In this document: piece after piece, positions 7,451 through 33,570 of the stretch
How positions within the stretch are numbered: position 1 is the first letter of the stretch
Layout: each line of letters begins with the position of its first letter
NCBI GenBank assembly: GCA_002269645.1
Contig: NIVC01003140.1
Coordinates: forward strand, 53,528-117,527
Reading direction: 5' to 3'
DNA length: 64,000 nucleotides
From: Macrostomum lignano
Lineage: Eukaryota
The notes under the pieces: generated by a model
Database searches by the model: none
What the model saw: only the letters and a program-made list of their open reading frames with translations
Told to the model about the DNA's origin: nothing
Program-made: the position numbers and the translations under genes

Positions 7451-7539
7451 CTAAAATGGTGCATAATTATTTCATTTGCCATCTTTTTGTCTACTGGCAG
7501 ACAAAATAACTAATTGAAAATAAGCAGTAAGAGTTTATT

Positions 7540-11600: not shown

Positions 11601-14600
11601 TCCTTGACACCTGAGCAGCCATTTCCCTCCAGCCTTGACACCTGAGCAGCCATTTCCTATCAGCCTTGACACCTGAGCAGCCATTTCCCATGACCCTTCC
11701 CACCTGAGCAGCCATTTCCCATCAGCCTTGACACCTGAGCAGCCATTTCCCATGACCCTTCACACCTGAGCAGCCATTTCCCATCAGCCTTGACACCTGA
11801 ACAGCCATTTCCCATCAGCCTCAACACCTGAGCAGCCATTTCCTATCAGCCTTGACACCTAAGCAGCCGTTTCCCATCAGCCTTGACACCTGAGCAGCCA
11901 TTTCCTATCAGCCTTGACACCTGAGCAGCCATTTCCCATCAGCCTTGACACCTGAGCAGCCATTTCCTATCAGCCTTGACACCTGAGCAGCCATTTCCCA
12001 TCAGCCTTGACACCTGAGCAGCCATTTCCCATCAGCCTTGACACCTTAGAGGCTTTCGATTTACCACAGAAATCGGAGCCTCCATTTACCGCAAGTATCG
12101 CCAGTAACGGTGCACCTTAATGCATCCGTGCTTATCGCAACCTGGCAGAATCATTTGAAAACTGAGGCTCTCCCTAATTAATCTTTCAAACTAACATTTC
12201 AAGGCTTTCAGACCCGTCAGCGAGGACTCGGCAGCTGCCTCCGCCTCGGTCAGCCAGGCCAAGCTCAGCGGCTCGGACACCAACGGTGCTCCTGATACTC
12301 TCTCTTCAGCCAATTCTCTGAGCAACAACCTTGCTCTGCTGAAAGCTCGAGCAGCTGGCATGATGCAGCAAGATCAAGATGACGATGAGGATGAGATTGC
12401 GGCTGCTGCCAAACGCGAGGAGGAGGACGTGCAGAAGATGTCGAAACGGAAGCTGAAGAAGCTAACCCGAATGAACGTTGCGGAGCTCAAGCAGAGCGTG
12501 GACCGGCCTGAAGTAGTTGAGATGCACGATGTCTGCTCCAAGGACCCCAAGCTGCTCTGCCTGCTCAAGGCTTACCGGAATGCCGTGGCCGTTCCTAGGC
12601 ACTGGTGCGCTAAGCGCAAGTACCTACAGGGCAAGCGCGGCATAGAGAAGCCACCGTTCCAGCTGCCCGACTTCATCAAGGCCACGGGCATTATGGAGAT
12701 GCGCGAGACTGGTCAAGAGAAAGACGACGCCAAGACTATGAAGCAGAAGATGCGGGAGCGAGTCCGCCCGAAAGTGGGCAAGATTGACATCGACTACCAG
12801 AAGCTGCACGACGCCTTCTTCAAATACCAGGTCAAGCCGCATCTCACCAGTGAGTTTTTGTCTCGCAACTATTCCTGTCTTTACTTCTGCAGTCCTTGGA
12901 GGGCAGAGCAGCTCACCTGTTGAATACTTTAGCGGGACAAGAATCGCTAGAGTCATTGCAAACAGCTCACTAGTGACTCTAGCGCTTTAGAGGCAACTCG
13001 GTGATTCTACAGCGACTCTGGCACGCCTCAGATACAAGCCCAGAGACATTACAAAAGCGCCCCAGAGTCTTTTCAGACTCACAGACAAAAAACGCCCCAA
13101 ATAGACTAGGCGACTCTTTGATAACTTTTTGGCGGAATCTAGAATCACTTCTTTCCTATTTTACTTCTATTGACTGCAACGACTCTGGGGCGTCGCAAGT
13201 GACTCTGGGACCGGAACGCTTCTTAGCCTAGCTACCGTTTTCATCGGAAAACCCCTGAGGGCCAATCCCCAAATCACGAGGAGAATACATGCCTGACAAT
13301 TAAAAAGTCAGGGTCGCTTTACACCCTGTGTGAGCGTGTGGCAGTGTACATATCTCGTGTGCGTGCTCAGGGGTCAGCGGTTGTCGCCTTGAGTTGCGGC
13401 TTGTTGTCCACAGCCCTCAAATAACCATCTGGCAGTTATTGTAATCAATCCACTACCGTTTCTCTTTTTTATAGCCCACGGCGACTTGTACTACGAAGGT
13501 CGCGAGTTCGAGACCCGGCTGAGGGCGAAGAAGCCCGGCGCTCTATCTGACGAGCTCCGCACCGCGCTTGGCATGCCTGTCGGCCCCGGCAGCGACAGGT
13601 ACCCGCCGCCCTGGCTCATCGCCATGCAGCGCTACGGCCCGCCGCCTGCGTTTCCCCGGCTGCGCATACCCGGCCTAAATGCTCCCATACCTGAAGGCTG
13701 CTCTTTTGGCTATCACGCAGGTTTGTACTTGTATTAATGACTGCGACTACTCTTCAATTGCATGTCTTGACTGTCTCTTGTGTTTCGGCACAAAATTTGG
13801 GCATGCTTATGTAACTGCTAAACTGTTGTAGTCTAGTGGTTAGAGCGTCGGACTGCGACTGGAAGGTCGGGGGTTCGATTCTCGGCCAACTCGGAACAAT
13901 TTGTGTTTTTTTATCAAGACACTTAACTTTGCATTGCTTCAGTTCACCCAGCTGTAAAATGGGAGCCAGCATTAGCTGGGGTAATTGAGGGTTTGTGTGG
14001 CGACCCGATGCGCCGAGCAGTCATATGCAGCTGAACAGTCGTATGCAGCCTTCCAATGCGCCGCGCAATAGCTACGGCTGAGCTGTCGGTTGCACAATAT
14101 ATATTATTTATTATTGTTAATATACTAAATACTATTATAGTGTTATAAAGTTAAGAATCCAGCCAGTACTATATCAGGTCGCATCGATTAATCGGTAAAT
14201 TTTTTTGCAAAATTTGCTATATATAAAAACAGCATTTCTCTTCAAAATTGGACCATTTTGGGTAAAATGCAACTATGATTAGGAAATAGAAAATTCAGCC
14301 GATCCACTTCCAGGCCACTGCTGCTGGCGTCATTAGGTGATCGCAGAATGCTCACTGCTCCCCCTATCCTTATTTCAGGCGGCTGGGGCAAGCCACCAGT
14401 TGATGCTCACGGCCGCCCAGTCTACGGCGATGTGTTCGGCTACGCCACCCAGCAGCAGCTGGCTGCCCCTGCCGAGACTCCCAGCCAGCCAGTTGAGAGG
14501 CGCCTGTGGGGCGAGCTGGAGTCCGAGTCCTCGGAGGAAGAAGAGGAAGACGACGACGATGACGATGATGAAGATGGCAACGAGGAGGCGGGCGATGACG

Positions 14601-15003
14601 AAGACGGCGCGGTCGCAGCGGCCCTGGCCGGAGCGGCCACCCAAGCGGCGCGCTGTCGTCGGCCACGCCGGCCGGGCTGGAGACGCCCGACATGATCGAG
14701 CTGCGGAAACAGCGAACCGCTGCCGCAGTGGAAGCTGCCATGGAAGGCGACGGCGAAGAGCCTCTGGCCTACCGTGTGTTGCCCGAGATGCAGACCAATG
14801 TTGGCGACGCATTCATGGGCAGTTCCAAGGTTTATGCTGTTGGCGGCGCCGCGAGCGGTCCAGGCGTTGCTTCTTCTGGCGCCGGCGGCGCTGCATCAAC
14901 TGGCTCCAGGAAGCGGCCTCCTCCGCGCGCCGGTCAGCAGGAGCCAGCGCCGCAGGCTAGCGTATCTGCGGCTAAGAAGTACCAGAAGGACTACAAGTTC
15001 TAG
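8655..15003 (+). CDS. SF3B2: Splicing factor 3B subunit 2 (SAP145). Exons 8655-8939, 9312-9957 (or duplicate 12204-12849), 13475-13720, 14379-15003; one apparent 1-nt frameshift at about 14640
   Basis: Hallmark motifs SVAELKQ..RPEVVEMHDV..KDPKLL, VPRHWCAKRKYLQGKRGIEKPPF, THGDLYYEGREFE, PPPWLIAMQRYGPPP, GWGKPPVD, WGELE, KKYQKDYKF. Introns are GT-AG and phase-consistent (0, 1, 1). Confidence 0.95.
8966..9152. repeat. 31-bp intronic minisatellite, about 6 units
   Basis: Unit cctgagcagccatttcccatcagccttgaca; starts at 9028 and 9059 give a 31-bp period. Confidence 0.9.
10880..11151 (+). pseudogene. SF3B2: Defective duplicate of SF3B2 exon 1
   Basis: Relative to copy 1 there is a 4-nt loss (ggagacgatcaatct to ggagacaatct) and 17 vs 18 nt between TTTGAA and GATGTC, with an in-frame TGA. 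The gtgaga donor is retained. Confidence 0.7.
11176..12046. repeat. 31-bp intronic minisatellite, about 28 units (expanded copy)
   Basis: Same unit as 8966-9152, with variant units. Confidence 0.92.
13259..13335 (+). repeat. Dispersed ~77-bp element with two hairpins; second copy at 54309-54385
   Basis: tacatgcctgacaattaaaaagtcagggtcgctttacaccctgtgtgagc vs tacatgcctgacgattagaaagtcagggtcactgtgcaccctgtgtgagc. Confidence 0.7.
13823..14115 (+). mobile_element. tRNA-derived SINE with a CORE-like central domain, in SF3B2 intron 3
   Basis: A box tagtctagtgg and B box ggttcgattct. Body caagacacttaac...gcttcagttcacccagctgtaaaatggg resembles the CORE domain. AT-rich tail; no proper acceptor stem. Confidence 0.75.
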
Positions 15004-15973
15004 TTCGCCTTCTATTTAGGGTTGCAGGCTTGTAAAATTCGATTAAACTGTCTGACTTTTCATACTGTATCTTCAAGACAATTTACATCATTGTGCTTAG
15101 CATTTGGGCAACTCATTAGGGCTTAGAAAGGCGTGTAATTTGGCCCGAATTCTGCAGTTGGAACATCTACCTACATTGATGGATACATAGGGGTCAATAA
15201 AAGGTCATTAAGCGTGTGGGTAAATACAACGCAAGTTGCCATACCTCACTTTACGTGCTGTTTTTTAATAAGATCAGATTGTGAAGTAACATTATCTAAC
15301 AGGAGTTATAGTTAGCATACACAGGGTTCCGGAAAACATTCTCCGCTATACCTTAATATGTAATGGCAGTTCATTTGATGTTTAAATCTGTTTAAGAAAC
15401 TCCTTACTAAGAACAAAAAAAGTTACTCTGAATGTACGAATAAGTGAATCTGGAGTAAAATTTCTTTGTATATGTTTAATTATCTTTATTAGCAAACCCA
15501 TGCATCAGACCCCATGAATGGCAACTTAATTTTCGTGTTCACGCTGAATTTGCTGTTGCAAAACGCATTGTTTGTAGCAAGTGAATTATTTCTATAGCCG
15601 TCTCAACTGTCGATCTGACTGTTGCTTCAAAGGAAATAAAGCTTGTCATTAGTGTCGGCTATATGTTATTAAAGTTGCACTTATATACATATTACTCTGC
15701 ATTTTTGTACTTCTGGTCCTTTCTGAATCAGTTAAGACAAAGTTCGAGTATACCAGGGGTCCGATCCATCAGCTGCTTTGTTGCCAAAGTATTGGCAGAT
15801 GATTGCGAAGATTGATAGCTTACATAACTAACTAAAGCCACCCGAGGAATGTCAATTTGTCATTGATGAGATTATCAGTTGTTATTATAATCTAGCAACT
15901 CTGCGGGGTAGCAGACCATAGAAATATGCATTCCCGCATAAAAATGATTGGTCGCAAATCTCGTATTTCGTAA

Positions 15974-16111
15974 AACAATATTATCGCAATCAAAGGTGAC
16001 TGACAGTAAAATCAAACTGATCGACTTCGGCCTTTCTGTGCAGCTGAATCATCGGTCAGCTACTATCAGCCTATACTTCAACGCCGAAGGGCACGCTGTA
16101 CTTTCTGGCAC
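15974..16111 (+). pseudogene. Captured fragment of the kinase exon (homologous to 29122-29257; region around DFG)
   Basis: aaatcaaactgatcgacttcggcctttctgtgcagctgaa and ccgaagggcacgctgtactttctggcac are identical to the kinase exon, with indels elsewhere. Flanked by the direct repeats attggtcgcaaatctcg. Confidence 0.9.
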
Positions 16112-16219
16112 AAAAATTATTGGTCGCAAATCTCGACTTTAAGACCAATATGCGACCAAGATGGTCATGCGATCATGTAATCGACCATTCCTGCGACCAT
16201 GTCAGGCTTAGTTTTCTAA

Positions 16220-17604
16220 CGACCATTCATCCTAACCCCTCCACCCTCTTATGAGCGACCATCTCCCGACCATTATAGCGACCATCCATCCTAACCCCTC
16301 CACCCTCTTATGAGCGACCATCTCCCGAACATTATAGCGACCATCCATCCTAACCCCTCCACCCTCTTATGAGCGGCCATCTCCTGACCATTATAGCGAC
16401 CATCCATCCTAACTCCTCCTCCCTCTTATAAGCGACCATCTCCCGACCATTATAGCGACCATTCATCCTAACCCCTCCACCCTCTTATGAGCGACCATTT
16501 CCCGACCATTATAGCGACCATCCATCCTAACCCCTCCACCCTCTTATGAGCGACCATCTCCCGACCATTATAGCGACCATCCATCCTAACCCTCTCCACC
16601 CTCTTATGAGCGGCCATCTCCTGACCATTATAGCGACAATCCATCCTAACCCCCTCCACCCTCTTATGAGCGACCATCTCCCGACCATTATAGCGACCCT
16701 CCATCCTAACCCCTTCACCCTTTTATGAGCGGCCATCTCCCGACCATTATAGCGACCCTCAATCCTAACCCCCTCCACCCTTTTATGAGCGACCATCTCC
16801 CGACCATTATAGCCACCATCCATCCTAACCCTCTCCACCCTCTTATTAGCGGCCATCTCCCGACCATTATAGCGACCATCCATCCTAACCCCCTCCACCC
16901 TTTTATGAGCGACCATCTCCCGACCATTATAGCGACCATCCATCCTAACCCTCTCCACCCTCTTATGAGCGGCCATCTCCCGACCATTATAGCGACCATC
17001 CATCCTAACCCTCTCCACCCTCTTATGAGCGGCCATCTCCTGACCATTATAGCGACCATCCATCCTAACCCCTTCACCCTTTTATGAGCGACCATCTCCC
17101 GACCATTATAGCGACCATCCATCCTAACCCTCTCCACCCTCTTATGAGCGGCCATCTCCTGACCATTATAGCGACCATCCATCCTAACCCCTTCACCCTT
17201 TTATGAGCGACCATCTCCCGACCATTATAGCGACCATCCATCCTAACCCTCTCCACCCTCTTATGAGTGACTATCTCGCGACCATTATAGCGACCATCCA
17301 TCCTAACCCTCTCCACCCTCTTATGAGCGACTATCACCCTCTTATGAGTGACCATCCATGCGACCATCTCCCGACCATTATAGCGACCATCCATCCTAAC
17401 CCTCTCCACCCGCTTATGAGCGACTATCACCCTCTTATGAGTGACCATTCATGCGACCATCTCCCGACCATTATAGCGACCATCCATCCTAACCCTCTCC
17501 ACCTTCTTATGAGCAACCATAGCCCTCTTATGAGTGACCATTCATGCGACCATCTCCCGACCATTATAGCGACCATCCATCCTAACCCTCTCCACCCTCT
17601 TATG
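16220..17604. repeat. 59-bp satellite array; further blocks at 20126-20641 and 23161-23378
   Basis: Unit ccctccaccctcttatgagcgaccatctcccgaccattatagcgaccatccatcctaac; cctaac at 16231 and 16290. Confidence 0.95.
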
Positions 17605-20093
17605 GCTGCAATCTGCTCTGTTGTCGAGCGACCGGGCCTGAAGCCACTTTGGAGGCTCAGGATCATTTGGTTGAGGCCAGGCAGCAGCCGATTACGCAGT
17701 ATAGCATTGAGCAGCTTAGCCAGAGTGCATTCCAGAGCGATGCCGCGTTGGTTGTCCAGACTGGTGGATGCGCCCTTCTTGGGGATGGAGACGATCTTAG
17801 AGGTGCGCCAGCTGTCAGCAGCAGTAGCACCTGGGTTGCCTCCAAGCGGACAGTGCTTGTTGAGCACAGCTGTGATGTCCTGTGTCAGCTCTGGCAGCTT
17901 GAGCACCCTGGGTGGAATGCCATCTACTCCGGCGGCAGCGTCGGGGCGCATGGTTCTGAGCGCTCGGTTCACCTCGTAGGCAGTCAGCGGGCCGGAGTTA
18001 AAAGCCGAGGGCTCGGCCGGGGTAAAGTTTTCGATCGGTAGCAAATCAGCAGAGGGTGGTGAGGCGTTGAGCACATTGTGGTAGTGAGTGGCCAGCAGGG
18101 CTTTGCGATGGTGTATAGACTCAGCACCTACAGCGGCATTGGGCCTCTGCTTCCTGTCAGTCAGGCGGTTGATGGCGCGCCAGGCCGCTGTGTGCCGGCA
18201 GTTGTCTGTTGCTAGTTGAATCTCAGCAACAGCCTCCTGGACAAAGGCTTCGGTCCTCCGGGCATGCGTGTCGCGAAGATGGGCCCGGGCTGTTTCAGCC
18301 TGCTCACTGTCTTGGCCAAAGACTGCGGTTGTTCTTTGCACGTCGCGCCTAGCGATGGAGATCTCCTCGTTGGAGTCTCAGGCGGCTTTTGGCTGGTGCG
18401 GTGTTCGTTTTGGTAGGGTCGAGGCAGCTTTCTCAACAGCTCTGGTGAAGGCGTCCGCCGATTCATTCAGGGCCGGAGTAGCATTTTGCAGCTTTTCAAT
18501 GAACGCACTGCGCGTGTCTGGGTTTCTCAGATCTGCCCAGAGGGGGTGCGGTGGGCCAGCCTTGAACTTTTTCCAACGGCAGTCGATGTCGCAGGCCAGC
18601 AGAGAATGGTCGGACCTCACGCAGCTGGGGCGGATATTGACCACTTTGCGCAGTCGAGACCTGATTGCCGTTGGGCACAAAATCCAGTCCAGCCTGGTGG
18701 TCCGTCCATTTGGGCCGAAGAAGGTGGGTAGCTTGTTGTACTGCTGCCGCATGACACCATTGGCTGCAATCAGGTCTTGAGAGTGAATGAAAGTTGACAG
18801 GTAGTCCGAGTTGGTGTTGGTGGAGCCGCAGTTGTTCTTCACTAGACGGCCGTCAGGGGACAGTGGCGCGTTGAAGTCTCCAGCCACAAAAAGCAGGTCG
18901 CGATCAGGGACCGAGTTGATGACGAAGTGGCTTCAGAGTCGTCGAGCAGTCGTCGAGGCCTGTAAAACTCACCAAAGAGCTGTGTCAATTGTCTTTGTGG
19001 ACTTCCGCAAAGCTTTTGACTCAGTGTGCCGGCGCGCGATCGCGTGGCTGCTCGAACACTATGGCGTTCCTCCGGCTCTTATCGTTGCAGTGATGGACCT
19101 CTACAACAACAGCAAAGCCTTTGTCCAAACCAGCGATGGCCCAACTGAGGACTTCTGCACCAGCTCTGGAGTCCTCCAAGGTGACACGTTGGCTCCACTG
19201 CTCTTCATCCTTGTCGTCGACTACGTGCTGCGCCGAAGCCTCACAGAGGAGGACAGCTACCTGCTGGCGTCACGCCGGAGCTCCCGCCGCGGTGCTGCCC
19301 CTCTGCCCGCCCTCGCGTACGCCGACGACATCGCCCTGCTGTGCCACAGTCTGACTGCCGCCCAGAGAGCGCTCTCGAGACTCTATGAGGAGAGCGCCCG
19401 AGTCGGACTGCAAATCAACGCACGCAAGACGGAAGTGCTGCACGTGGGCACCGATGCAGCACCAATCCTGACCCTACCAGATGGACAAGTCATTTCAGCC
19501 TGCAGAGACTTCCGGTACCTGGGCTCCCTCGTGATGAGCCCTGACTCCATCATCGCCGACCGGAGGTCACAGGCCTGGCGCGCGGCTCATCTCCTCAGGG
19601 AGGTCTTCAGCTCAGCTGCCAACGACGACCTGAAGATGCGCCTGTTCCGCGCTGCCGTAGAGCCAATCTTCCTGTACGGACTGGAGGCAGTGCCAACGAC
19701 CGACTCGAGGTCCCGAGCCCTGGACGCTGCCTACCGATCGCTGCTGCGGTTCGCCCTTGGCATCCATTATCCAGAGCGGCTGCCGACGGACCAGCTGATG
19801 GCGAGAGCCCGTGTGCCTCAGCTCAGTGCCACTCTCCAGCGGCGCCGGCTAATGCTCGTCGGCCACTGCCTCCGCAGCTACGGCAGAGGGGAGCAAAACC
19901 CGCTGGCGCTAACCCTGCTGCATCAGCCAACCGAGCGTCTCCGACGGGGCCAAGGCCGGACCGCCACGCTGACCGCCACGCTTGAGTCTGACCTTCAAGC
20001 CATTAACCTGACCCCACAATCTGCCACAAACTGTCCTTCTCGTCTCTTCTGCGAGCGCGTGCGCGCAAGACGCCCACCATAATATATTTGCGT

Positions 20094-20125
<32 letters not shown>
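17605..20125 (+). mobile_element. 5'-truncated, 5'-inverted RTE-like LINE (APE end to RT N-terminus inverted at 17605-~18920; rest of RT sense at ~18925-20082), (TA)15 tail, 11-bp TSD accctcttatg
   Basis: Minus ORFs carry APE motifs (AGDFNA, RLDWIL, SDH) and the RT start up to QSGFRPGRSTTEQIAAI. The plus ORF resumes at RAVVEACK...VDFRKAFDSV...GVLQGD...YADD. TSD at 17594-17604 and 20126-20136. Confidence 0.9.
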
Positions 20126-20128
<3 letters not shown>

Positions 20129-20641
20129 CTCTTATGAGCGACTATCTATGCGACCATCTCCCAGCCATTATAGCGACCATCCATCCTAACCCTCTTATAA
20201 GCGACCATCCATCCTAACCATCTTATGAGCGACCATCCATGATGCGACCATCTCCCAACCATTATAGCGACCATCCATCCTAACCCTCTCCACCCTCTTA
20301 TGAGTGACTATCTCGCGACCATTATAGCGACCATCCATCCTAACCCTCTCCACCCTCTTATGAGCGACTATCACCCTCTTATGAGTGACCATCCATGCGA
20401 CCATCTCCCGACCATTATAGCGACCATCCATCCTAACCCTCTCCACCCGCTTATGAGCGACTATCACCCTCTTATGAGTGACCATTCATGCGACCATCTC
20501 CCGACCATTATAGCGACCATCCATCCTAACCCTCTCCACCTTCTTATGAGCAACCATAGCCCTCTTATGAGTGACCATTCATGCGACCATCTCCCGACCA
20601 TTATAGCGACCATCCATCCTAACCCTCTCCACCCTCTTATG

Positions 20642-23130
20642 GCTGCAATCTGCTCTGTTGTCGAGCGACCGGGCCTGAAGCCACTTTGGAGGCTCAGGAT
20701 CATTTGGTTGAGGCCAGGCAGCAGCCGATTACGCAGTATAGCATTGAGCAGCTTAGCCAGAGTGCATTCCAGAGCGATGCCGCGTTGGTTGTCCAGACTG
20801 GTGGATGCGCCCTTCTTGGGGATGGAGACGATCTTAGAGGTGCGCCAGCTGTCAGCAGCAGTAGCACCTGGGTTGCCTCCAAGCGGACAGTGCTTGTTGA
20901 GCACAGCTGTGATGTCCTGTGTCAGCTCTGGCAGCTTGAGCACCCTGGGTGGAATGCCATCTACTCCGGCGGCAGCGTCGGGGCGCATGGTTCTGAGCGC
21001 TCGGTTCACCTCGTAGGCAGTCAGCGGGCCGGAGTTAAAAGCCGAGGGCTCGGCCGGGGTAAAGTTTTCGATCGGTAGCAAATCAGCAGAGGGTGGTGAG
21101 GCGTTGAGCACATTGTGGTAGTGAGTGGCCAGCAGGGCTTTGCGATGGTGTATAGACTCAGCACCTACAGCGGCATTGGGCCTCTGCTTCCTGTCAGTCA
21201 GGCGGTTGATGGCGCGCCAGGCCGCTGTGTGCCGGCAGTTGTCTGTTGCTAGTTGAATCTCAGCAACAGCCTCCTGGACAAAGGCTTCGGTCCTCCGGGC
21301 ATGCGTGTCGCGAAGATGGGCCCGGGCTGTTTCAGCCTGCTCACTGTCTTGGCCAAAGACTGCGGTTGTTCTTTGCACGTCGCGCCTAGCGATGGAGATC
21401 TCCTCGTTGGAGTCTCAGGCGGCTTTTGGCTGGTGCGGTGTTCGTTTTGGTAGGGTCGAGGCAGCTTTCTCAACAGCTCTGGTGAAGGCGTCCGCCGATT
21501 CATTCAGGGCCGGAGTAGCATTTTGCAGCTTTTCAATGAACGCACTGCGCGTGTCTGGGTTTCTCAGATCTGCCCAGAGGGGGTGCGGTGGGCCAGCCTT
21601 GAACTTTTTCCAACGGCAGTCGATGTCGCAGGCCAGCAGAGAATGGTCGGACCTCACGCAGCTGGGGCGGATATTGACCACTTTGCGCAGTCGAGACCTG
21701 ATTGCCGTTGGGCACAAAATCCAGTCCAGCCTGGTGGTCCGTCCATTTGGGCCGAAGAAGGTGGGTAGCTTGTTGTACTGCTGCCGCATGACACCATTGG
21801 CTGCAATCAGGTCTTGAGAGTGAATGAAAGTTGACAGGTAGTCCGAGTTGGTGTTGGTGGAGCCGCAGTTGTTCTTCACTAGACGGCCGTCAGGGGACAG
21901 TGGCGCGTTGAAGTCTCCAGCCACAAAAAGCAGGTCGCGATCAGGGACCGAGTTGATGACGAAGTGGCTTCAGAGTCGTCGAGCAGTCGTCGAGGCCTGT
22001 AAAACTCACCAAAGAGCTGTGTCAATTGTCTTTGTGGACTTCCGCAAAGCTTTTGACTCAGTGTGCCGGCGCGCGATCGCGTGGCTGCTCGAACACTATG
22101 GCGTTCCTCCGGCTCTTATCGTTGCAGTGATGGACCTCTACAACAACAGCAAAGCCTTTGTCCAAACCAGCGATGGCCCAACTGAGGACTTCTGCACCAG
22201 CTCTGGAGTCCTCCAAGGTGACACGTTGGCTCCACTGCTCTTCATCCTTGTCGTCGACTACGTGCTGCGCCGAAGCCTCACAGAGGAGGACAGCTACCTG
22301 CTGGCGTCACGCCGGAGCTCCCGCCGCGGTGCTGCCCCTCTGCCCGCCCTCGCGTACGCCGACGACATCGCCCTGCTGTGCCACAGTCTGACTGCCGCCC
22401 AGAGAGCGCTCTCGAGACTCTATGAGGAGAGCGCCCGAGTCGGACTGCAAATCAACGCACGCAAGACGGAAGTGCTGCACGTGGGCACCGATGCAGCACC
22501 AATCCTGACCCTACCAGATGGACAAGTCATTTCAGCCTGCAGAGACTTCCGGTACCTGGGCTCCCTCGTGATGAGCCCTGACTCCATCATCGCCGACCGG
22601 AGGTCACAGGCCTGGCGCGCGGCTCATCTCCTCAGGGAGGTCTTCAGCTCAGCTGCCAACGACGACCTGAAGATGCGCCTGTTCCGCGCTGCCGTAGAGC
22701 CAATCTTCCTGTACGGACTGGAGGCAGTGCCAACGACCGACTCGAGGTCCCGAGCCCTGGACGCTGCCTACCGATCGCTGCTGCGGTTCGCCCTTGGCAT
22801 CCATTATCCAGAGCGGCTGCCGACGGACCAGCTGATGGCGAGAGCCCGTGTGCCTCAGCTCAGTGCCACTCTCCAGCGGCGCCGGCTAATGCTCGTCGGC
22901 CACTGCCTCCGCAGCTACGGCAGAGGGGAGCAAAACCCGCTGGCGCTAACCCTGCTGCATCAGCCAACCGAGCGTCTCCGACGGGGCCAAGGCCGGACCG
23001 CCACGCTGACCGCCACGCTTGAGTCTGACCTTCAAGCCATTAACCTGACCCCACAATCTGCCACAAACTGTCCTTCTCGTCTCTTCTGCGAGCGCGTGCG
23101 CGCAAGACGCCCACCATAATATATTTGCGT

Positions 23131-23160
<30 letters not shown>
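20642..23160 (+). mobile_element. Second copy of the same inverted RTE-like insertion (3037-bp offset), (TA)14 tail
   Basis: ORFs at 20464, 21415 and 21848 are identical in translation to those at 17427, 18378 and 18811. Confidence 0.9.
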
Positions 23161-23161
<1 letters not shown>

Positions 23162-24164
23162 CCCTCTTATGAGCGACTATCTATGCGACCATCTCCCAGC
23201 CATTATAGCGACCATCCATCCTAACCCTCTTATAAGCGACCATCCATCCTAACCATCTTATGAGCGACCATCCATGATGCGACCATCTCCCAACCATTAT
23301 AGCGACCATCCATCCTAACCCTCTCCACCCTCTTATGAGCGACCATCCATGTGACCATCTCCCGACCATTATAGCGACAGGGAGGATGGTCGCTATATGA
23401 TGTCACAGCGTGACAGGTCAATGGTCGCTGAAGGATGGTCGCTGAAGGATGGTCGCTCATCCATTTAGCGACCGATTTTTATGCGGAATTTTTATGGCTG
23501 AACATTTGAAAGATCGAGATTTTTCTACTTAAAGTAGTTCAAAATATATCCTCCTTGCCAGCAGATTTTCTTGTTTAGACAGCACCCGAGAAAGGGATTT
23601 AAACATCGTTTTGTAGAGTACGTTCGAAATTTCTCCTGTAAGGGTTAGCTAGTTTCTTCAGTTGTACTAATAGGCTGAAGCTTTCTGTACAATACTTTAT
23701 CGTGTTTACCCCAGAGTTTGCAATATCCAGCTCTGTTCAGCGCTTTAAGTAAATTTACTAAGTGCCAGGACATACATTTTTGTATGAAATATGCATGCAA
23801 GCACGATAGCGTTTCCAGCAGAGTTTATGCTATCTCTGGGTAGTGACACAGTGCATGTACATGCGTAACTACATGTGTTTTGAACTGTTCGCTGATTTCA
23901 CATTCTGCTATAAAGAAATTCAAACATTTTATGATTCTTTAAGAACTTTTCATGCAACCGCAGGCTTATATGTAACACAGCAGACATGTACATCTACATG
24001 TAGCACTGCTGCGCATGGATCCACGGTAGGCCTCTCTGACCGTGGAAGCAATCTTATTTGTACGAGTATCTGTATATCAGAGTGAAAACCCAAGCCTATT
24101 TTCCTGCCTCAGACACCTCCGGTTAAACTAATAAACGGTTTAAATTAAGCTGCTGTTGGTAACA

Positions 24165-27100
24165 ATGTCTTCGTTAACAAATCACCAAGACTCGATCGAT
24201 ATGAACAGTCAGTCAATCCAGGTAGATCTGAAATGTGACTTTCTCAATAACATGTACGGATATATGTGTATCAGTGAATTCTAAAAGGTTCCATTTAAGA
24301 TTTGACTATTAGTATTAAATTTATGTTATTGCATTAACCGTGAAGTTGTATCGGATCCTATTCTTTCTTTACTTACATGCTGATGCAGTGTTGATGTACT
24401 GCAAGCAAATATTGATGTATAGTATATGAAACATGTAAAGAGTAGTTGCACTGCTAAACAGATTGGTTTCTAAATTTCCAAATGAGATGGCCGTACATCG
24501 CACGCGCGCAAGGTTCTGCATGAACATGCACATGCACTTTGCTGCATTCTCTAAAATAATAGCTCGAGGTATTATGGCAATTTTCGAGTAATACAGAATA
24601 CTTGCCTGTTTCACAGCAAATCGCTCGACTAGCTTTTCAAGGCGACTTCGACCAGATTCGCTCACTGGCCTCGCCTGAACTGGTGACGTGTAAAGACCAA
24701 AATGGTCGGACAGTTCTCATGCTGACTGCTGACACCGAATTCCCAAGCCCCTGGCAGTCGGCAAAGTGCATCGAGTACTTGCTACACCTCGGCGCCGACC
24801 CGTTCGAGACCACAGCAGGTGGCGACACGGCTGCTCATTTTGCGGCCAGGCGGGACAATGTGCGGCTGCTGGCACTGCTGCCGTTCGACACGAAGTGGCT
24901 TCAAAATGTGGAGGGCGGCTCACCTCTGACGGAGGCGATCAGGAGCGGAAGCTGGCGGTGCGCGAAGCATCTCCTGCACCTGCTGCGCCTGCGAGATCGA
25001 AGCAGTGATAAGAAAAAGATACTCAACGCTGAGAGCAGGAGCATTTTGAGTCCCGCTCGGAAGGAGGGCAGATCTGGTTTTGCTGAAATCATTGAACGGT
25101 AAGAGGATGGACTAAAACATTTTTTCATTGCCAATTGTCCCAATACCTAGAGAACTTGGTTTGTTTTTGTTTCAGTGAAACTCGCTTGGTTACATCTGGA
25201 TACCTCACCCTGACCGTCACTGGTCTCACGGAGATGGTGAGACACTTTTTCATATTTATTCCAGCCTACGTAATATGTTTGCAAGTTGAAGTTGGGTTTG
25301 CAACGTCTTTGACTGTCAGGAATAGTAGACGACTTATGGTGGATGAGTGGAATGAGTAGAACGGCTTTCTAGGAAATCTCGTTTTTCAGAAAGCTCGTTA
25401 TTTAGGGGCTGGTTTGAGCTGCGCGAAAAAGACTACGGAGTTTTAAAAATCCAATGTCAACACAAATACGAGCAGATTAAAAAGCTATCTTTTAGTGCAT
25501 GCCGACATGCATACATACCTCATACATGCATTTTTCCTATTATTCGATAAATATGTTCCGAACCAAAAATTTCCAAAATAACAAAGAAGCTTTGATTTAA
25601 TTTCTTCTTACTGTTAAGCAATATTGTTGTCAAAATTTTCAGGAAAAATTGGACTCAGCATCTTTCATTTTAATAAAACTTCACGCTAGTTTTGCTAGTA
25701 AAAAGACACAAGTGTACGTACTGTAGTTCTTTACAGTTCTTAATGCATAAGATGCGTTTATTATAATTGAATTGATAAAGAATAACTAAACGAGGAACCA
25801 AATAAAAGGCCACTGAGGTCATTTTTAGACTACTTGGTTTTATACGCACGTATTTCAGCATATGCACAAAACTATAAAAAATTATACATCTAGATAAATT
25901 GCTAATTCCTGCAAATAAAGCTTTGTAGGAATCCATTGAGCAATCAGACATGAATGTTATATTGAAGTACTAATTAAACAATGAGCATTCGAACTGTCAA
26001 TAAAAAGCTATCACTATTTTTGAGCCGAAAAAAGAGAACTCCTCGTCGGTTTTAATGTATTTCCCGTCATGGCCATTCCACGCTCGTGAAGGGACAAATT
26101 TCTGTTATCATGCGATTCACTGCTGCCATCGCCGCTCACCGATCCGCAGGAAAAGGCACTGCGAAGGACTTTGATATGCGCAGCGATGAGGGGCGATGTG
26201 GAAGAGTTCCAAAGGCTGGCAAGCTGCAGCAACTGCGACATTCCATCCAGCACTGGCTCCACGGTGCTGATGGATTTTGTGGAAGTGTGCGACACCGGTA
26301 GCGACCCAGAACTCCATGCAAGCATCCGCCAGCGACTCATTGAACTCTCGGATGTCACAGCGGTCGATGTGCTGGGCAACTCGTGCCTGCACAAGGCTGC
26401 TGCTGATCTGGGCTCGCCAGCCGACTGCGAGGCTCTGATAGCGGCTGGGGCCTCTGTCAACAGCCTGAACAGCCTGCACCAGACCCCGCTGATGCTCGCA
26501 GTGAGGCGGCCGCAGGTTGTGGAGCAGCTGCTGCGGCTCGGAGCCGACTGGACGCGGCAGAACTGCTACGGCGATGATGCGCTGGATTTGGCTGACGGAC
26601 TCGGGTGCCGCGAGACCAGCGCTCTGCTCTCCAGGTGGCCTGCTGAAACTCTTCAATTTCATTTACCTCATTCAACCCCTATTACTACGGTCAGTTTAGT
26701 TTTTCCCAGCGGCAGTATTCCCCCACCGAGATTTCCCCACTGAGATTTTTTAGACTAGCTTCCTCCCACTATTTTCCTGATTCGTCTTTACTGCCCAAGG
26801 TTTTGCAGCTGCGATTTTCCAAATGGCTCCCCACTGAGCGTTTTTTTAAAGCTGTCCAAAGCGCTAAATCTGGCAATAAATCGCAGTATGGCTTCCTACA
26901 CAATCACGAGATGAACTACATATGTAACTAGTCTCGTGACGAATGCGAACTTTTGCATGAAAATTCACAACGAGCTTTTTCTTGCGGGAAAACCCTGCGG
27001 GAAAAACCTGCGGGAAAACCTGCGGGAAAACCCTGCGGGAAAACCCTGCGGGAAAACCCTGCGGGAAAACCCTGCGGGAAAACCCTGCGGGAAAACCCTG

Positions 27101-30100
27101 CGGGAAAACCCTGCGGGAAAACCCTGCGGGAAAACCCTGCGGGAAAACCCTGCGGGAAAACCCTGCGGGAAAACCCTGCGGGAAAACCCTGCGGGAAAAC
27201 CCTGCGGGAAAACCCTGCGGGAAAACCCTGCGGGAAAACCCTGCGGGAAAACCCTGCGGGAAAACCCTGCGGGAAAACCCTGCGGGAAAACCCTGCGGGA
27301 AAACCCTGCGGGAAAACCCTGCGGGAAAACCCTGCGGGAAAACCCTGCGGGAAAACCCTGCGGGAAAACCCTGCGGGAAAACCCTGCGGGAAAACCCTGC
27401 GGGAAAACCCTGCGGGAAAACCCTGCGGGAAAACCCTGCGGGAAAACCCTGCGGGAAAACCCTGCGGGAAAACCCTGCGGGAAAACCCTGCGGGAAAACC
27501 CTGCGGGAAAACCCTGCGGGAAAACCCTGCGGGAAAACCCTGCAGGAAAACCCTGCGGGAAAACCCTGCAGGAAAACCCTGCGGGAAAACCCTTCGATCG
27601 AAAACCCTGCGGAAAAACCCTGCGGGAAAACCCTTCGATTGAAAACCCTGCGGAAAAACCCTGCGGGAAAACCCTGCGGGAAAACCCTGCGGGAAAACCC
27701 TGCGGAAGAACCCTGCGGGAAAACCCTTTGATTGAAAACCCTGCGGAAGAACCCTGCGGGAAAACCCTTCGATTAAAAACCCTGCGGAAAAACCCTGCGG
27801 GAAAACCCTTCGATTGAAAACCCTGCGGGAAGATCCAGTGCTTTTGCAACTACGTACAGGCAGCTTCATATTATCCCATATATGCTTAGCTGCAATTTCA
27901 GTGACAGAAACCGAAACTTCTCCGTTCTTTCAGCTATCTGACTCGGCGCTCGCTTCAACTCCCAATTTTTACTACGGCATCGTATAGGAATTTTTTTGAA
28001 GAACGAATTGAGCTATCGTAAGTTACACTTGGATTTACTAAAGGCATTAAAAATACAGTTTTTTCCTACAATAACAGTAAAATAACTGTTCGTAGAACAA
28101 GTACGCGCAGTCGCAGTAACCAAAGTATATACATACAAGCATATATTGTCCCTAAATCATGGCTTCAGATCTCTATGCTCACCATTCCTCAAGACCTGGA
28201 CATGCATTCGTCTGCTGGGCAGGGGCGGAATTGGCGAAGTTCACGAGGTAGAGACAGACCGAGGGGTGAAGTGCGCAGTCAAGACCATCAAACTGCCCAT
28301 GCAAGGAGGGAACGCACAAAGCGATCTGATATCCAATATCGACACCATTGTGCAGGGCGAGCGGAATCTCTGCTTTCTCAGGCACCGGAATATTGTCAAG
28401 TTCATCGAGATCTGCCACTCGGAACCCTTCACGGTCGTGCTATTCATGGAGCTCTTAGACGGTCAGTCTCTGACAGACTTCATTAATGGTAAACCGCTGG
28501 ACGAACTATTTATTCAACGCTTCACGGGTCAGGTAAAGTGCTTTGAATGCCCATATTTTATGTTATTTTTCTTTGAAATCCGAATTCCAAATTCAGAATT
28601 CAAGATTACGTAGATATGCTTCTTATCCAAGCTGCAAACTTCATTGTGTCCGCAATGAGTCTTAAAGAGTGAGATGAACTAATGTCAATAAATACGTAAC
28701 AAAACTATTTATCCAATGGAAAGTTAGACGTATCCAATACGTTATTATTAGGTCGTAGTTCTACGAGTAAAATTAATAGTAAATAAATAGTGTTTCTATT
28801 AATATTTATTATTGATTCACCATTTTTTCGAAACAAGCTTCTTGGAGGATCATAAATGAAACGTCTCATGGGCGTTTCTACGATTACAAAAAAGTTTTGA
28901 AGACGTCTAGTCTATCCGATTCGAAATTTCGTTATACGGAAGAGCACTAATCACCGAAAAGTCTCTCATGCACTTTGTCTTCTCTTTCTGCTTCTACGAA
29001 CTAATATTTCTCTGCCTGCAAACATGGTGAATAACCCACGGCTTGTTCCAAACAGATTTGCAGTGCTCTCAGCTACATGCACAGCAGAAAGCCACCGGTG
29101 CTGCACAGAGACATCAATTGCAACAATATCATCGTACTCAGAGGGGACAGTGAAATCAAACTGATCGACTTCGGCCTTTCTGTGCAGCTGAACCGGTCGG
29201 TCAGCCACGTATCAGCCTATACTCCAACTCCGAAGGGCACGCTGTACTTTCTGGCACCCGAGCTGTTGGGAGCAGATGAATCGGACACTGTGAAATACAG
29301 CCCAGAGTCAGACGTCTGGGCGATGGGCTGCACAGTTTATCAAATGGTTACAGGCACTTTGCCACACGGCCATTGCTCGAATATGCTGGCCCTGGCCAAC
29401 TGCCTGAGCTTACAGGGTGCCCCAAAGCTGACTCGTCCAGTCAGCAGGAAGCTGGTTAATTTCTATGCAGACTGCGTTGCCCAAAACCGCAGACTGAGAA
29501 AGTCAGCTGCAGAATTGCTGCGGCACGAGTTTCTGCTCAATACGTAAGCAGATCAGATTTTGGTGAACTTGCTTTAATAGAGCTAGTTGATACTAGAAAC
29601 TCCAAATCTACCTTAGATGATTCAAATCAAATCAATATCTTGAAAGTACTCGTACAAATTCATCGAACATTGAATGCGTGCTGACACTCAGGTAAACAAG
29701 CATTTTATGAAAATTGATGTAGATTTGCCTTGCCTACTCTTGCAGCGAACCTGATACCTCACCTGTCGCAGCTGAGGATGCTGAGAACCAGCCAGCAGCG
29801 CTGCGTGTGGAGCCGGTTTATGGAGCAGCTCCACCGCAGGGTGCCTGCCTGCTGTTCTGCATCGGCGGTGACGAGCCAAGTCTGCTCGCGGACGTCAGTC
29901 TGGCGCAAACTGTCTTCGCTAGACTGAGATTCACCGTCAAAGTTTCTATGGACCCCACGTGCGACGAGCTGGTTGACGCGCTCAACCAGACTGCCTTCAG
30001 CCAGGAGCTCTCGGATCACCAATGCTTCGTGTGCTGCGTTCTAGCAGCCAAAGCTGGCACCGATGGCGCGATCTGCACCAGCGACGGCGAGCAGCTGGAG

Positions 30101-30433
30101 CTCGGGGACATCATCGGCAGGTTCAAGCCAAACCAGTGTCGCGGTCTGCGGGGCAAGCCGAAGCTCTTCTTCTTTCACACCCTGGCGAATTTAGCAGGCT
30201 CAACGGCCGAGAATATTCAAATGAAGGACGCGGACTTCTTGGTTGTCAGCTACAGCGGAACTCGAAGGCCTTCGCCGATGCAGGAGATGCTCTCACTAAT
30301 TGACAAGCGACACACCGAGTGCAGCATTGCTGAGCTGGTTGGTATGACAGCCACGGCAGAAGACAGCAACCTGAAGTTTGTTTCGACGCTATCTAAGCCG
30401 CTTTTTCTCAACCCAACAGTTGCTTCTGGCTGA
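24165..30433 (+). CDS. Predicted 874-aa ankyrin-repeat / Ser-Thr kinase / inactive caspase-like protein. Exons 24165-24221, 24617-25098, 25176-25236, 26150-26634, 28169-28532, 29056-29543, 29746-30433
   Basis: All six introns are GT-AG with matching phases (0, 2, 0, 2, 0, 2); the 2625-nt total is divisible by 3 with no internal stop. The weakest link is the gtggcc donor at 26635. Confidence 0.7.
24617..25098 (+). CDS. Ankyrin-repeat exon (block 1)
   Basis: KDQNGRTVLML, LLHLGADP, GGDTAAHFAA, GGSPLTEAIRSG; tcacag acceptor and gtaaga donor. Confidence 0.85.
26150..26634 (+). CDS. Ankyrin-repeat exon (block 2)
   Basis: DVLGNSCLHKAA, LIAAGASVN, HQTPLMLAV, LLRLGAD, YGDDALDLA. Confidence 0.85.
26983..27829. 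repeat. 13-bp satellite (ccctgcgggaaaa)n, about 65 units, within the predicted ankyrin-kinase intron
   Basis: Visible 13-bp periodicity; 13-aa period in all frames; degenerate at the 3' end. Confidence 0.97.
28169..29543 (+). CDS. Protein kinase domain, two exons (28169-28532, 29056-29543), STE/MAP3K-like
   Basis: GRGGIGEV, CAVK, alphaC Glu (QGERN), LRHRNIV, HRDINCNN, DFG, GTLYFLAPE, SDVWAMGC, and R..AAELLRHEFL. Confidence 0.92.
29746..30433 (+). CDS. Caspase-fold (peptidase C14-like) domain lacking catalytic His and Cys
   Basis: CFVCCVLAAKAG in place of ..SHG; DGEQLELGDIIGRF..NQCRGLRGKPKLFFFHTLAN in place of KPKLFFIQACRG; DADFLV; STLSKPLFL at the C-terminus. Confidence 0.8.
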
Positions 30434-31869
30434 TTTTATTTAGCAAGTGCACATTCAGTAACGCTATTTAAAGTAATTAAAGTAATTAATTCACTCCTTG
30501 AGTTGAGTAGATGATTTGTTGTATCGTGTACTTTAGTCGCATACAAATCTACGAGATCTCCGTTCATTTTTGTCACTGCAAATACGAGCGTACCAAGTAA
30601 TGACAATACTAGCTCGTTTCTATGAATTAATTTTGTTATAACCTTTCAGACCTCCTCGCATAGCGGAGAATTGTCTTGGTAGCTGTTTTGGTGCCCGAGC
30701 TGTAGGGCACTGATTAAGCTGCTTTTTTAGATCCCACAACGCTGCTTGTTTACTAAGTCTGATTAGGGCTGTAGAGCGTCAAGGTTGGTTGTGACGCTTT
30801 ACTTTTCTCTAATGACTTTAAATTCTGTAATTTACTACTACTATCACGAAGTTATTGCTCAACTTGTCTCACTGCCAATACGGCTTTCCTCTTTCTCTCT
30901 AATGACTAACCCGACTGAACTAGGAAATTTTTGGAATGATTCTTACCCAATGATTGTACAGTTGAGATCGACATCTAGCAAGAGAACCAGAGCGTCCAAG
31001 ATCCCAAAGTTGGGGAAATTCGTAGCGTATTTATATGGCAGAGTGCGGAAGGTGGGAAGGGTGTGTGTGGGGCAGTCAAAGTATAGTTAAAACAAAATCA
31101 CTCATTTAAACAAAGTATTATTTATCCAAGCAAAATTTACCTAAAGTAAATGGCGGTAATTCAAACATATGGTAAAGTACGACCTGTCTCACTACAACGT
31201 AAACTTCTATTTAAAAAAGATGTTCCTCAACCGGATTTCTGTGTATGTAAAGCACATACGGAGAACACATGTATGAGGTAATAAACGCTATTATAATCTC
31301 TATTACGCATCTAGCAGTACTTACATGCATACACACAGTTTTGATTTACGATGCACTTACTCACGTATACGCTTATTTTATGATTTTTCAACATTATGCT
31401 TTTGTGCCTAGTAGAAATGTGTCGGGAAAAGTGTCCATAGTCACTATAACAATGTACGAAGTATCAGAACTGAGCTTCATGATTTCCTGATGTTCGGCAT
31501 GTAAAATTTTTAGCTGCATGTAAAATGCTTCGTTCATCCCTTGCTCCTCAATTTCTACTTGCGATGTGAGCATTGTGTCAAATGATTGCTGCGCGCTTGA
31601 AATTATTTTTTCTGATTCTATTTTCATTGGTTTTCATTTTGCTGTTGCACTACCTACGGTCCTACGGTGTCTCAAGTTGGACACATCTGCTGTGTACATC
31701 AACTGTATCATTTTTGAAGACATGCAATTCTAAAATTTATGAGTTTGTTCGAGCCGCCGACGGGATTCTTATTTTAGAATGAGCTGAAATTCGTTTGTAT
31801 GAGTTTAAAAAATCTTCTAAGTACTTCTCGCTAAATTAACAATATCAACTGCAGCAACAAAACAAACCA

Positions 31870-32967
31870 TCAGTCAGTGACGTAATCTCCTTGGCATTGA
31901 ATAACAGCGTCGCAGTGATCCCAAAGTCGATGCAACTCCTGCTGCAGGCTCTCAATCTCCAGACCCCTTGCCCACTGCAACGTCGCTTCTTGCACTTCAG
32001 CATGGTTCCCAAACTGGCGATGCTCGAAGTCTCGCTTCAGCCAAGAAAACAAAAAAAAACGGTCACAAAGATTAAAATCTGGACTGTACGGTGCCTGTTG
32101 CAGCAATCGGATGCCTCGCTTCTCCATGAAATGTTGAGTTGCTGCAGCTGTGTGAGGCCGGGCGTTGTCCCACTGCCAGATCACCTGATCAAAATGAATC
32201 GGTTGACTTCTTAAAGATTGCCAGAGATTCCCGGTTCGCTGAACGAAGTTGACAATGAACTCCGCATCCACTGACTGTCTTGGTTTGGTTGTTTCAAATG
32301 AAAACCTTTCGCTGGGGGTGAAGGCAGCAACAAGCAGAGTCTTCTTGTTTGTCATGCATCTTCTCACCACCTGGGGCCTGGGCTCCCCCTTCGACAGCCA
32401 GCATCTGTTGCTCATCTTGCAGGGCTGGCCTTCAAAGAAGATCAAGGACTCATCTTGGGTGACCAACTTGTCCATGATGTTGTTGATTCCTTCACTCTGA
32501 AACACGCTACGGATGTTTCTGGCACATGCCACCCTAGCCTGTTTGTTGGCCTCGGTGAGGTACGAGTAATGGGGCACCACGTCTTCTCTCAAAATTCGAT
32601 GCACCGTTGACTTGTCAACCTCCAGCCAGTCAGCAAGGGTCCGTACTGACACTTTTGGATCGTCTTCAATCAGAACACGCGCATCGCTGATCAGCTCTGG
32701 TGTTCGAGTTGATCGAGGTCTCCCGGCACCGCTGGCACTCGGGCAGTCGCCTGCTCCTTTAGTGGGGCTGGTCTTAGCATCAGCGGTGGCTGCCTTGAAA
32801 TAATTAAATACAGTTGCACGGCATGCAGCTCCACTGCCATACACGGAAGACAACTCTTCAAAGCACTGTTGAGCACTGATTCCAAGCTGCTGCCGCGTCC
32901 ATGCGTAAAATCTAAAGTTTTCTTTGCTTGGCTCCATTCGTTTTTGCACTGGCGTTGCAGTAGGCAA
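31870..32967 (-). mobile_element. Tc1/mariner DD34D transposase, 365-aa open ORF; TIRs not confidently located
   Basis: N-terminal HTH, then TQDES, WDNARPH and PYSPDFNLCD, with 34 residues between the second and third Asp. Confidence 0.9.
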
Positions 32968-33570
32968 AACTGAGCTATAAAAATCTATTAGTGATGCGCA
33001 AGAGAGGGTGCAGTGATACTTAAATCTCTTGTGCGTCTTCGGTACTGTCTATTGTAGCATGTGGTGCGCTGACAGCTGTAGCTATAGTTCACTCTTCAAA
33101 TAGCAGCAGTAATCTAAATAAATTTGGGACACCTGAAGTAGGTGTAGTAAAATAAAATTTTATTCTCTAAATACCTTTAGTTAAACACCTTTTTGATTCC
33201 AATACTCGTAATTACTCAGAACTGTCTTTATTCTACGAGGGTGTATGTTTGTGAAGCTTTGTTAAAAATCCAGATCAAGAAAATAAAAATCATGAGTTGC
33301 GCATGCTTCTGTACCTCTAACGATAAATTTTATTGTTGATTCTAGATACATACGAGCGTACATGTACATGAAGACAGCTACTTGCTGGTCATGTATCCCA
33401 AGGTTGACAATTTTGGTGAAGTTTTTAACGTTTTTCTCTGGTAAAGCGTTATAACAGTGAATGATTTTCCTTTGTATAGTAGTATCTTGTCCTCAGTATT
33501 AACCAACAAGTTTAATTTTGAGCAGTGCTACTGAGCGAGAAGTGGAAGCTCTTTCTGGCAGTAGCCATTC

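Follow-up and report, generated by a model that had tools for sequence, protein, structure and literature searches.

cFLIP(L) is a vertebrate pseudocaspase that heterodimerises with procaspase-8. Ankyrin repeats and a kinase or pseudokinase are joined in ILK, TNNI3K, RNase L, RIPK4 and ANKK1, none of which, to our knowledge, contains a caspase fold. In flatworms, the closest described protein is a caspase of Macrostomum lignano with a kinase pro-domain, which the main text of a recent paper (Genome Biol Evol 2024, PMC11463336) places as sister to the flatworm caspases whose pro-domain is of the ankyrin type (ANK-caspases) and treats as an initiator-type caspase. The same text names a caspase with a kinase domain in the annelid Eisenia andrei, confines ANK-caspases to parasitic platyhelminths, reports no FADD in platyhelminths and no death effector domain (DED) caspases in the parasitic species, and warns that models with unusual pro-domains could be chimeric predictions; for the M. 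lignano kinase-caspase it mentions no accession, loss of the catalytic dyad, ankyrin repeats or paralog family. The subject of the present analysis is the M. lignano gene BOX15_Mlig026099g1 (protein PAA53077.1, 902 amino acids), which lies in a 64,000-nucleotide stretch of contig NIVC01003140.1 (hereafter, the window) and encodes a single chain in which two blocks of ankyrin repeats are followed by a disordered linker, a STE20-like Ser/Thr kinase and a caspase fold without its two catalytic residues.

PAA53077.1 agrees in species and in kinase-plus-caspase architecture with the protein reported in the main text of PMC11463336, which should be either PAA53077.1, its duplicate PAA52966.1 or the paralog PAA89054.1. 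A sequence-only reading of the window had implied that the architecture was new, which did not hold up, as PAA53077.1 is already present in GenBank and UniProt with all three Pfam domains and a kinase-caspase is reported in that main text. The architecture has thus been annotated and reported before; what was not found described is the dead yet selected caspase domain, the kinase-pseudocaspase family and the presence of native ANK-caspases in a free-living flatworm, and no paper was found that combined a pseudocaspase, a kinase domain and ankyrin repeats.

Like platyhelminth ANK-caspases, PAA53077.1 carries an N-terminal ankyrin pro-domain upstream of a caspase fold; unlike them, it has a complete kinase between the pro-domain and the caspase domain and, with both His and Cys lost, is not a protease. 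With cFLIP(L) it shares a full caspase fold from which the catalytic Cys has been lost and which is kept under selection, but there is no DED match in Pfam, ankyrin repeats and kinase are in the same chain and the origin is an independent one in a flatworm-specific caspase clade. The order of ankyrin repeats and kinase from N- to C-terminus is that of ILK, TNNI3K and RNase L and the reverse of that in RIPK4 and ANKK1, and the kinase is nearest to the STE20 group (TNIK, MAP4K4, PAK, MST3), unlike the TKL/RIPK kinases of ankyrin-kinase proteins. The kinship with RNase L, RIPK4 and cFLIP drawn in the sequence-only reading therefore stands as analogy only, the nearest kinases being STE20 rather than RIPK and the pro-domain being of the flatworm ANK-caspase rather than the DED type.

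Predicted kinase-caspase chains were also found in the fish Alosa pseudoharengus (XP_076138190.1, P0204; PYRIN-kinase-caspase) and the snail Batillaria attramentaria (KAG5705283.1). These two and the Eisenia andrei fusion have the kinase N-terminal to the caspase, as in PAA53077.1, with other pro-domains or none. The caspase domains of the Alosa and Batillaria proteins keep the catalytic His, and that of Batillaria keeps QACQG too, unlike PAA53077.1. Since both domains branch outside the M. lignano clade, these two fusions are independent of the M. lignano one, and comparison of these predicted proteins shows that kinase-caspase fusions arose separately in several animal lineages.

Gene structure

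The annotated range of BOX15_Mlig026099g1 corresponds, to the base, to window positions 24165-30433, and the stretch compared (14165-40433) was identical to NIVC01003140.1 of assembly GCA_002269645.1. Four protein-like open reading frames (ORFs), two ankyrin, one split kinase and one caspase-like, were evident on the plus strand between 24000 and 30700 when the ORFs were listed and the letters read directly; AT-rich stretches and a 13-nt microsatellite lie between them. The eight-exon coding sequence translates exactly to PAA53077.1. The sequence-only reading had joined seven exons into a single chain, and that much proved sound: the seven give a stop-free frame of 2625 nt (874 codons and a stop) with matching phases, and Pfam Ank, Pkinase and Peptidase_C14 are all found in the product. 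What had been missed was an in-frame exon of 84 nt (exon 5, 27934-28017, plus strand), the 28 residues of which are the sole difference between PAA53077.1 and the seven-exon reading. This exon (acceptor tctttcag, donor gtaagt) encodes amino acids 362-390, YLTRRSLQLPIFTTASYRNFFEERIEL, a predicted disordered linker with a predicted local distance difference test score (pLDDT) of about 33; PAA53077.1, PAA52966.1 and P0122 all have the exon and P0002 lacks it.

RNA-seq data (STAR, StringTie, TACO and a de novo transcriptome) underlie the Mlig_3_7 annotation, which was split at trans-splice and poly(A) sites that had been mapped by experiment (PMC5730564); the exon chain is thus one of assembled transcripts and not an ab initio prediction. 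The annotated start of PAA53077.1 is in exon 1 (24165-24221, plus strand), which holds the start codon and residues 1-19 and ends at the donor gtagat. When the M. lignano spliced leader is joined to the exon 2 acceptor (24617), its terminal ATG reads in frame (M-QIARLAF...), and the older UniProt models P0002 and P0122 start exactly at QIARLAF. Exon 2 may therefore be a spliced-leader trans-splice acceptor, as an alternative to cis-spliced exon 1.

Intron 4 contains the 13-nt microsatellite (TGCGGGAAAACCC, 26983-27831, 64.6 copies), which accounts for five spurious ORFs of 229-313 amino acids, found on both strands, and is several hundred bases longer in one of the two gene copies described below than in the other.

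Pseudocaspase domain

Exon 8 (29746-30433, plus strand; amino acids 674-902, TGA stop) encodes a linker and the complete caspase-like domain. This domain matched Pfam Peptidase_C14 (PF00656) with 48.2 bits against a gathering cut-off of 21.4 (E 1e-12), and its PDB matches were caspase-3/6/7 (aligned to the caspase-3/6/7 ancestor) and caspase-8, with E values of 1e-12 to 1e-10. In the alignment, the position of the catalytic His is occupied by Ala777 (30053-30055), with a 2-residue insertion (LAAKAG) in place of SHG, and that of the catalytic Cys by Leu820 (30182-30184), where KPKLFFFHTLAN replaces KPKLFFIQACRG and the QAC motif has become HTL. Active-site loops are shortened, and the KPKLFF strand and the C-terminal beta6 strand STLSKPLFL are conserved.

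Structure prediction, which had been suggested as a check on the sequence-only reading, gave a complete caspase fold of six strands with flanking helices (AlphaFold2, 12-sequence alignment; pLDDT 85, predicted template modelling score 0.85). Foldseek aligned this model over its whole length to procaspase-8, -6, -3 and -7 with template modelling scores of 0.77-0.82, and among the matches was the procaspase-8 chain of the caspase-8:cFLIP complex 3h11. Judged from its sequence and modelled fold, the domain is a pseudocaspase, a caspase homolog by descent and not an active protease, in agreement with the earlier proposal. Because both His and Cys have been lost, the protein itself should be unable to cleave substrates.

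Evidence for the fusion

A second copy of the gene (g2, locus L002; PAA52966.1, 903 amino acids) lies in a long syntenic duplicate with about 2% divergence in both exons and introns. In both genomic copies every one of the seven introns is GT-AG, and the sole coding indel between the copies is of 3 nt and in frame. Nonsynonymous to synonymous rate ratios (dN/dS, Nei-Gojobori) between the copies were 0.56 for the ankyrin region, 0.41 for the kinase and 0.24 for the caspase-like exon. For the latter, 7 nonsynonymous and 9 synonymous differences were counted (P = 0.006 against the neutral expectation), which, at the level of this codon comparison, shows purifying selection on the caspase-like exon.

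The kinase-to-caspase junction is AATAC/gtaagc ... ctcttgcag/C (slashes mark the splice sites), the 202-nt GT-AG intron and compatible phase being present in both copies; the gtaagc donor and cttgcag acceptor are those named in the sequence-only reading, which had also correctly noted that the kinase exon has no in-frame ATG before its beta3 Lys. In the caspase-like exon, the first in-frame Met is residue 68 of 228 and comes after the fold's first strands. The spliced leader of M. lignano has ATG at its end (PMC8629364), and when this ATG is joined to the caspase-like exon it is out of frame, with a stop at codon 4; the same is true of the kinase exon. An operon or trans-splicing reading of the locus was rejected on these frame grounds.

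An exhaustive representative search found a kinase from the same family, with a caspase-like domain directly after it, also in PAA89054.1 (P0123), the P0125 cluster, P0139, P0150 and PAA89053.1. The caspase-like domains of these kinase-bearing paralogs are 26-29% identical to that of PAA53077.1, and P0123 too has an intron directly after the kinase domain. A word-index homolog search with the caspase-like region (244 amino acids) returned no match, not even to itself, which reflects a limit of the index and is not evidence of absence. Taken together, the second copy, the signature of selection, the lack of a start codon of its own, the recurrence in paralogs and the shared intron make a chimeric annotation unlikely.

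The exon 7 donor is followed, when intron 7 is retained, by an immediate in-frame TAA (29545-29547). Retention of this intron would yield an ANK-kinase isoform that lacks the caspase-like domain.

Ankyrin and kinase domains

The ankyrin repeats (Pfam E 1e-24) occupy amino acids 20-362 and lie upstream of Peptidase_C14 with the kinase in between. The first block is encoded by exon 2 (24617-25098, plus strand; amino acids 20-180; Pfam Ank_4 and Ank_2) and the second by exon 4 (26150-26634, plus strand; amino acids 201-362; Pfam Ank_2 at residues 261-338), which ends in a weak donor, gtggcc, that is conserved in g2. Between them, the 61-nt exon 3 (25176-25236, plus strand; amino acids 180-200), identical in g2, restores the frame. 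In a full-length AlphaFold2 model, the ankyrin region, including the first block, formed a continuous repeat solenoid with pLDDT of about 85. Based on a family alignment without caspase rows, this model had low quality beyond the ankyrin repeats (mean pLDDT 57, with the caspase part below 30), and no inter-domain inference was drawn from it. In tblastn comparisons, the exon 2 block was homologous to the pro-domain of M. lignano ANK-caspases, with identities of 49% to P0021 and 41% to P0140, well above generic ankyrin similarity.

The kinase N-lobe is encoded by exon 6 (28169-28532, plus strand), which contains GRGGIGEV (28218-28241), the beta3 Lys428 (28281-28283) of CAVK428 and the alphaC Glu, and the C-lobe by exon 7 (29056-29543, plus strand; donor gtaagc), which contains HRDINCNN (29104-29127) with HRD Asp530, DFG549 (29167-29175) and APE578. 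The Pfam Pkinase match covers positions 4-263 of 263 (E 5e-47). The nearest PDB matches were TNIK, MAP4K4, MAP3K2, PAK1 and MST3 (E about 1e-27 to 1e-23), followed by WNK1 and ASK1 at 1e-20; the placement in the STE20 group comes from these PDB matches and is provisional. A RIPK-type (TKL) kinase was considered and rejected, there being no RIPK among the 60 best PDB kinase matches listed. All of the motifs named above are kept, and the Lys of the catalytic loop (HRDxKxxN) is replaced by Asn532. Nearly all M. lignano paralogs examined have Asn at this position (HRDINCSN, HRDVNCRT, HRDLNCSN).

The gene family in M. lignano

More than 15 ANK-kinase paralogs, about 45% identical to PAA53077.1 and one of them with two kinase domains, were found in M. 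lignano as part of an expansion specific to this lineage, and protein database searches revealed no close homolog of the ANK-kinase unit outside this species. Three modules recur among these proteins: the ankyrin pro-domain of flatworm ANK-caspases, the kinase with the HRDxNCxN loop and caspase or caspase-like domains. They are combined in paralogs as ANK-kinase, ANK-kinase-kinase, ANK-caspase and kinase-pseudocaspase-ANK-caspase. PAA53077.1 belongs to a Macrostomum-specific three-module family, the links within which are seen in the predicted proteins and the history of which is inferred.

M. lignano ANK-caspases include P0140 (PAA56209.1), which keeps QACRG, P0293, P0138 and P0021; matches to a P0140 query consisted mainly of generic ankyrin proteins. 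At least three clusters of proteins with ankyrin repeats and Peptidase_C14 (P0140, P0293, P0021) were present, which shows that this free-living flatworm has predicted ANK-caspases of its own, contrary to the restriction to parasites stated in the main text of PMC11463336. None of the kinase-adjacent caspase-like domains has the catalytic Cys, and in the kinase-pseudocaspase-ANK-caspase paralogs the second caspase domain keeps SHG and QACRG. On a neighbour-joining tree, the pseudocaspase of PAA53077.1, the other kinase-adjacent pseudocaspases and the ANK-caspase domains of P0140, P0293, P0138 and P0128 formed one M. lignano clade with 100% bootstrap support, a result that holds for M. lignano ANK-caspases, as Schistosoma sequences were absent from the tree. 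No vestigial caspase exon was found within 10 kb downstream of the ANK-kinase paralogs P0007, P0008 and P0003, and paralogs that lack such a remnant do not discriminate between gain and loss of the domain in PAA53077.1.

Several other arrangements of these modules were noted. Locus L004 (NIVC01000166.1) contains two head-to-head genes, at 3437-9362 (minus strand) and 10001-15370 (plus strand), each of which encodes a kinase, a Cys-less caspase-like domain and a second caspase domain. The product of the plus-strand gene, PAA89054.1, has an ankyrin block between its two caspase domains; in the first of these the catalytic positions are swapped, with Cys in place of His and His in place of Cys, and the second keeps SHG and QACRG. 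At L003 (NIVC01002066.1, 12753-13579), the annotation of the ANK-caspase PAA61143.1 (P0021, 605 amino acids) is truncated, and the genome encodes the rest of the caspase domain past the annotated stop. Caspase exons 42-53% identical to the P0140 protease domain lie at 1995-2976 of L007 (NIVC01000875.1), about 7 kb upstream of the ANK-kinase-kinase gene P0003 and on the same strand. ANK-caspase genes can thus lie in tandem with ANK-kinase genes, and such proximity would favour exon shuffling of the kind seen in this family. In another M. lignano protein, P0126 (PAA65113.1), an LRAT domain is fused to a caspase-like domain with Ser for the catalytic Cys.

Genomic neighbourhood

No ANK-caspase gene lies downstream of the gene in the window, unlike the arrangement in the kinase-pseudocaspase-ANK-caspase paralogs, and the window contains no other family member except a 130-nt kinase-like relic upstream. 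The latter (16002-16131, plus strand; KIKLIDFGLSVQLN...), a short decayed copy of exon 7 about 8 kb upstream, is in sequence common to the duplicate locus and is probably a pseudo-exon relic. The upstream neighbour is an SF3B2-like gene (DUF382/PSP; 12360-14695, plus strand) which precedes the duplicate copy too, confirming segmental duplication, and a C2H2 zinc-finger ORF is located downstream (47322-48734, plus strand). Relative to L002, the window has two insertions. One, at about 17400-23700, is a retroelement duplicated in tandem, whose two RVT_1 ORFs (18811-20082 and 21848-23119) are identical, and the other, at 31039-33136, contains a DDE_3/HTH_32 (Tc1/mariner-like) transposase ORF on the minus strand (31870-32967). 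An expanded tandem repeat with a unit of roughly 60 nt is present at 16.1-17.4 kb.

Discussion

The explanation that fits these results best, and that we hold to be probably correct, is that the pseudocaspase of PAA53077.1, a member of the Macrostomum three-module family, serves in the manner of cFLIP for docking or dimerisation without proteolysis and so couples a STE20-like kinase to the pathway of the ANK-caspases. Selection would have kept the pseudocaspase for this role, its partner being either the protease domain of an ANK-caspase or a second copy of itself, and the contact would be made by the central sheet and the beta6 edge, both of which are conserved. Given the homology of the ankyrin region to the ANK-caspase pro-domain, this region might bring the protein to the same partner or platform that ANK-caspases use. 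The kinase could then be activated by induced proximity, could phosphorylate the partner caspase or downstream targets, or both. Conservation of the beta6 strand STLSKPLFL is only suggestive of heterodimerisation with an active initiator caspase. A bolder version, in which the kinase-pseudocaspase unit, by itself in PAA53077.1 and attached to an ANK-caspase in paralogs such as PAA89054.1, is a cis-fused flatworm counterpart of the vertebrate RIPK1/cFLIP/caspase-8 node that sets whether an ANK-caspase fires, the shared ankyrin pro-domain serving for recruitment, is a speculation to which we give rather little credence.

Several observations weigh against the favoured explanation. The Asn found across the family at the position of the catalytic-loop Lys makes kinase activity plausible, not assured. 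Support for the junction is indirect, in that it comes from annotation provenance, conservation and selection, and the selection test itself draws on two copies that differ by 16 substitutions in the caspase-like exon and may be recent duplicates or alleles. The node that joins this pseudocaspase to the other kinase-adjacent pseudocaspases has less than 50% bootstrap support. Most ANK-kinase paralogs lack a caspase-like exon within 10 kb downstream, which means that the kinase family functions without that domain. Finally, no paper mentioning Mlig026099 and no functional work on the gene were found.

A different role for the domain would be mainly that of a handle for homodimerisation of the kinase, like SARAH or coiled-coil regions in other STE20 kinases, in which case the protein would be a stress- or MAPK-type kinase with no connection to caspases or cell death. 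Much of the evidence suits such a handle: the kinase is STE20-like, STE20-like kinases commonly activate by dimer-driven trans-autophosphorylation, the caspase fold and beta6 dimer strand are kept in spite of shortened active-site loops, and no caspase part is needed by the more than 15 ANK-kinase paralogs. On the other hand, the homology of the ankyrin region is specifically to the pro-domain of ANK-caspases, and paralogs in which a kinase-pseudocaspase shares a chain or locus with an ANK-caspase with intact QACRG argue for a shared pathway; on balance, an exclusive role in kinase dimerisation seems unlikely. The caspase-like exon might instead be a decaying remnant, the functional product being an ANK-kinase such as the intron 7 retention isoform that stops at TAA 29545-29547. 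Selective constraint on the exon (dN/dS 0.24, P = 0.006 against neutrality), the in-frame indel, the intact ORF in both copies and the confident full-fold model speak against decay, and Cys-less domains that persist beside kinases in paralogs about 30% identical indicate retention long after catalytic death. Hence, even though both catalytic residues are gone and the loops are shortened, retention of intron 7 stops translation immediately, the ML2-based models P0002 and P0122 end at ...EFLLNT and the domain is absent in most paralogs, we consider decay quite improbable.

It could also be argued that the fusion is an artefact of annotation in which transcript assembly merged an ANK-kinase with a separate caspase-like gene, possibly its neighbour in a spliced-leader operon. 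Polycistronic precursors make up about 7% of assembled M. lignano transcripts (PMC5730564), the kinase is the last domain in some older gene models, and the authors of PMC11463336 warn in their main text of chimeric pro-domain predictions. However, the pipeline cuts transcripts at spliced-leader and poly(A) evidence (PMC5730564), the two domains are joined in both copies across a 202-nt GT-AG intron of compatible phase, the caspase-like exon offers no start codon before residue 68 and is out of frame with an ATG donated by the spliced leader, and the domain order recurs in divergent paralogs and at other loci. An artefact of this kind is thus very improbable.

The gene is structurally unusual and is best classed as a derivative of flatworm ANK-caspases into which a kinase was inserted and in which the protease is dead. 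Fused domains often mark proteins that work together, and their fusion here in one gene would connect a family of kinases with a branch of flatworm cell death, that of the ANK-caspases, which is poorly understood. If the pseudocaspase were only a dimerisation handle, interest would be limited to lineage-specific domain shuffling, and if the RIPK1/cFLIP/caspase-8-like version were true, the unit would be an independently evolved checkpoint of cell death or immunity. The absence of FADD in platyhelminths and of DED caspases in the parasites among them, as reported in the main text of PMC11463336, raises the question of how their initiator caspases are recruited and restrained. A kinase tied to a selected, dead caspase domain provides a concrete hypothesis for the control of flatworm initiator caspases. 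RNA interference and transgenesis exist for M. lignano, so that this hypothesis can be tested in the animal itself.

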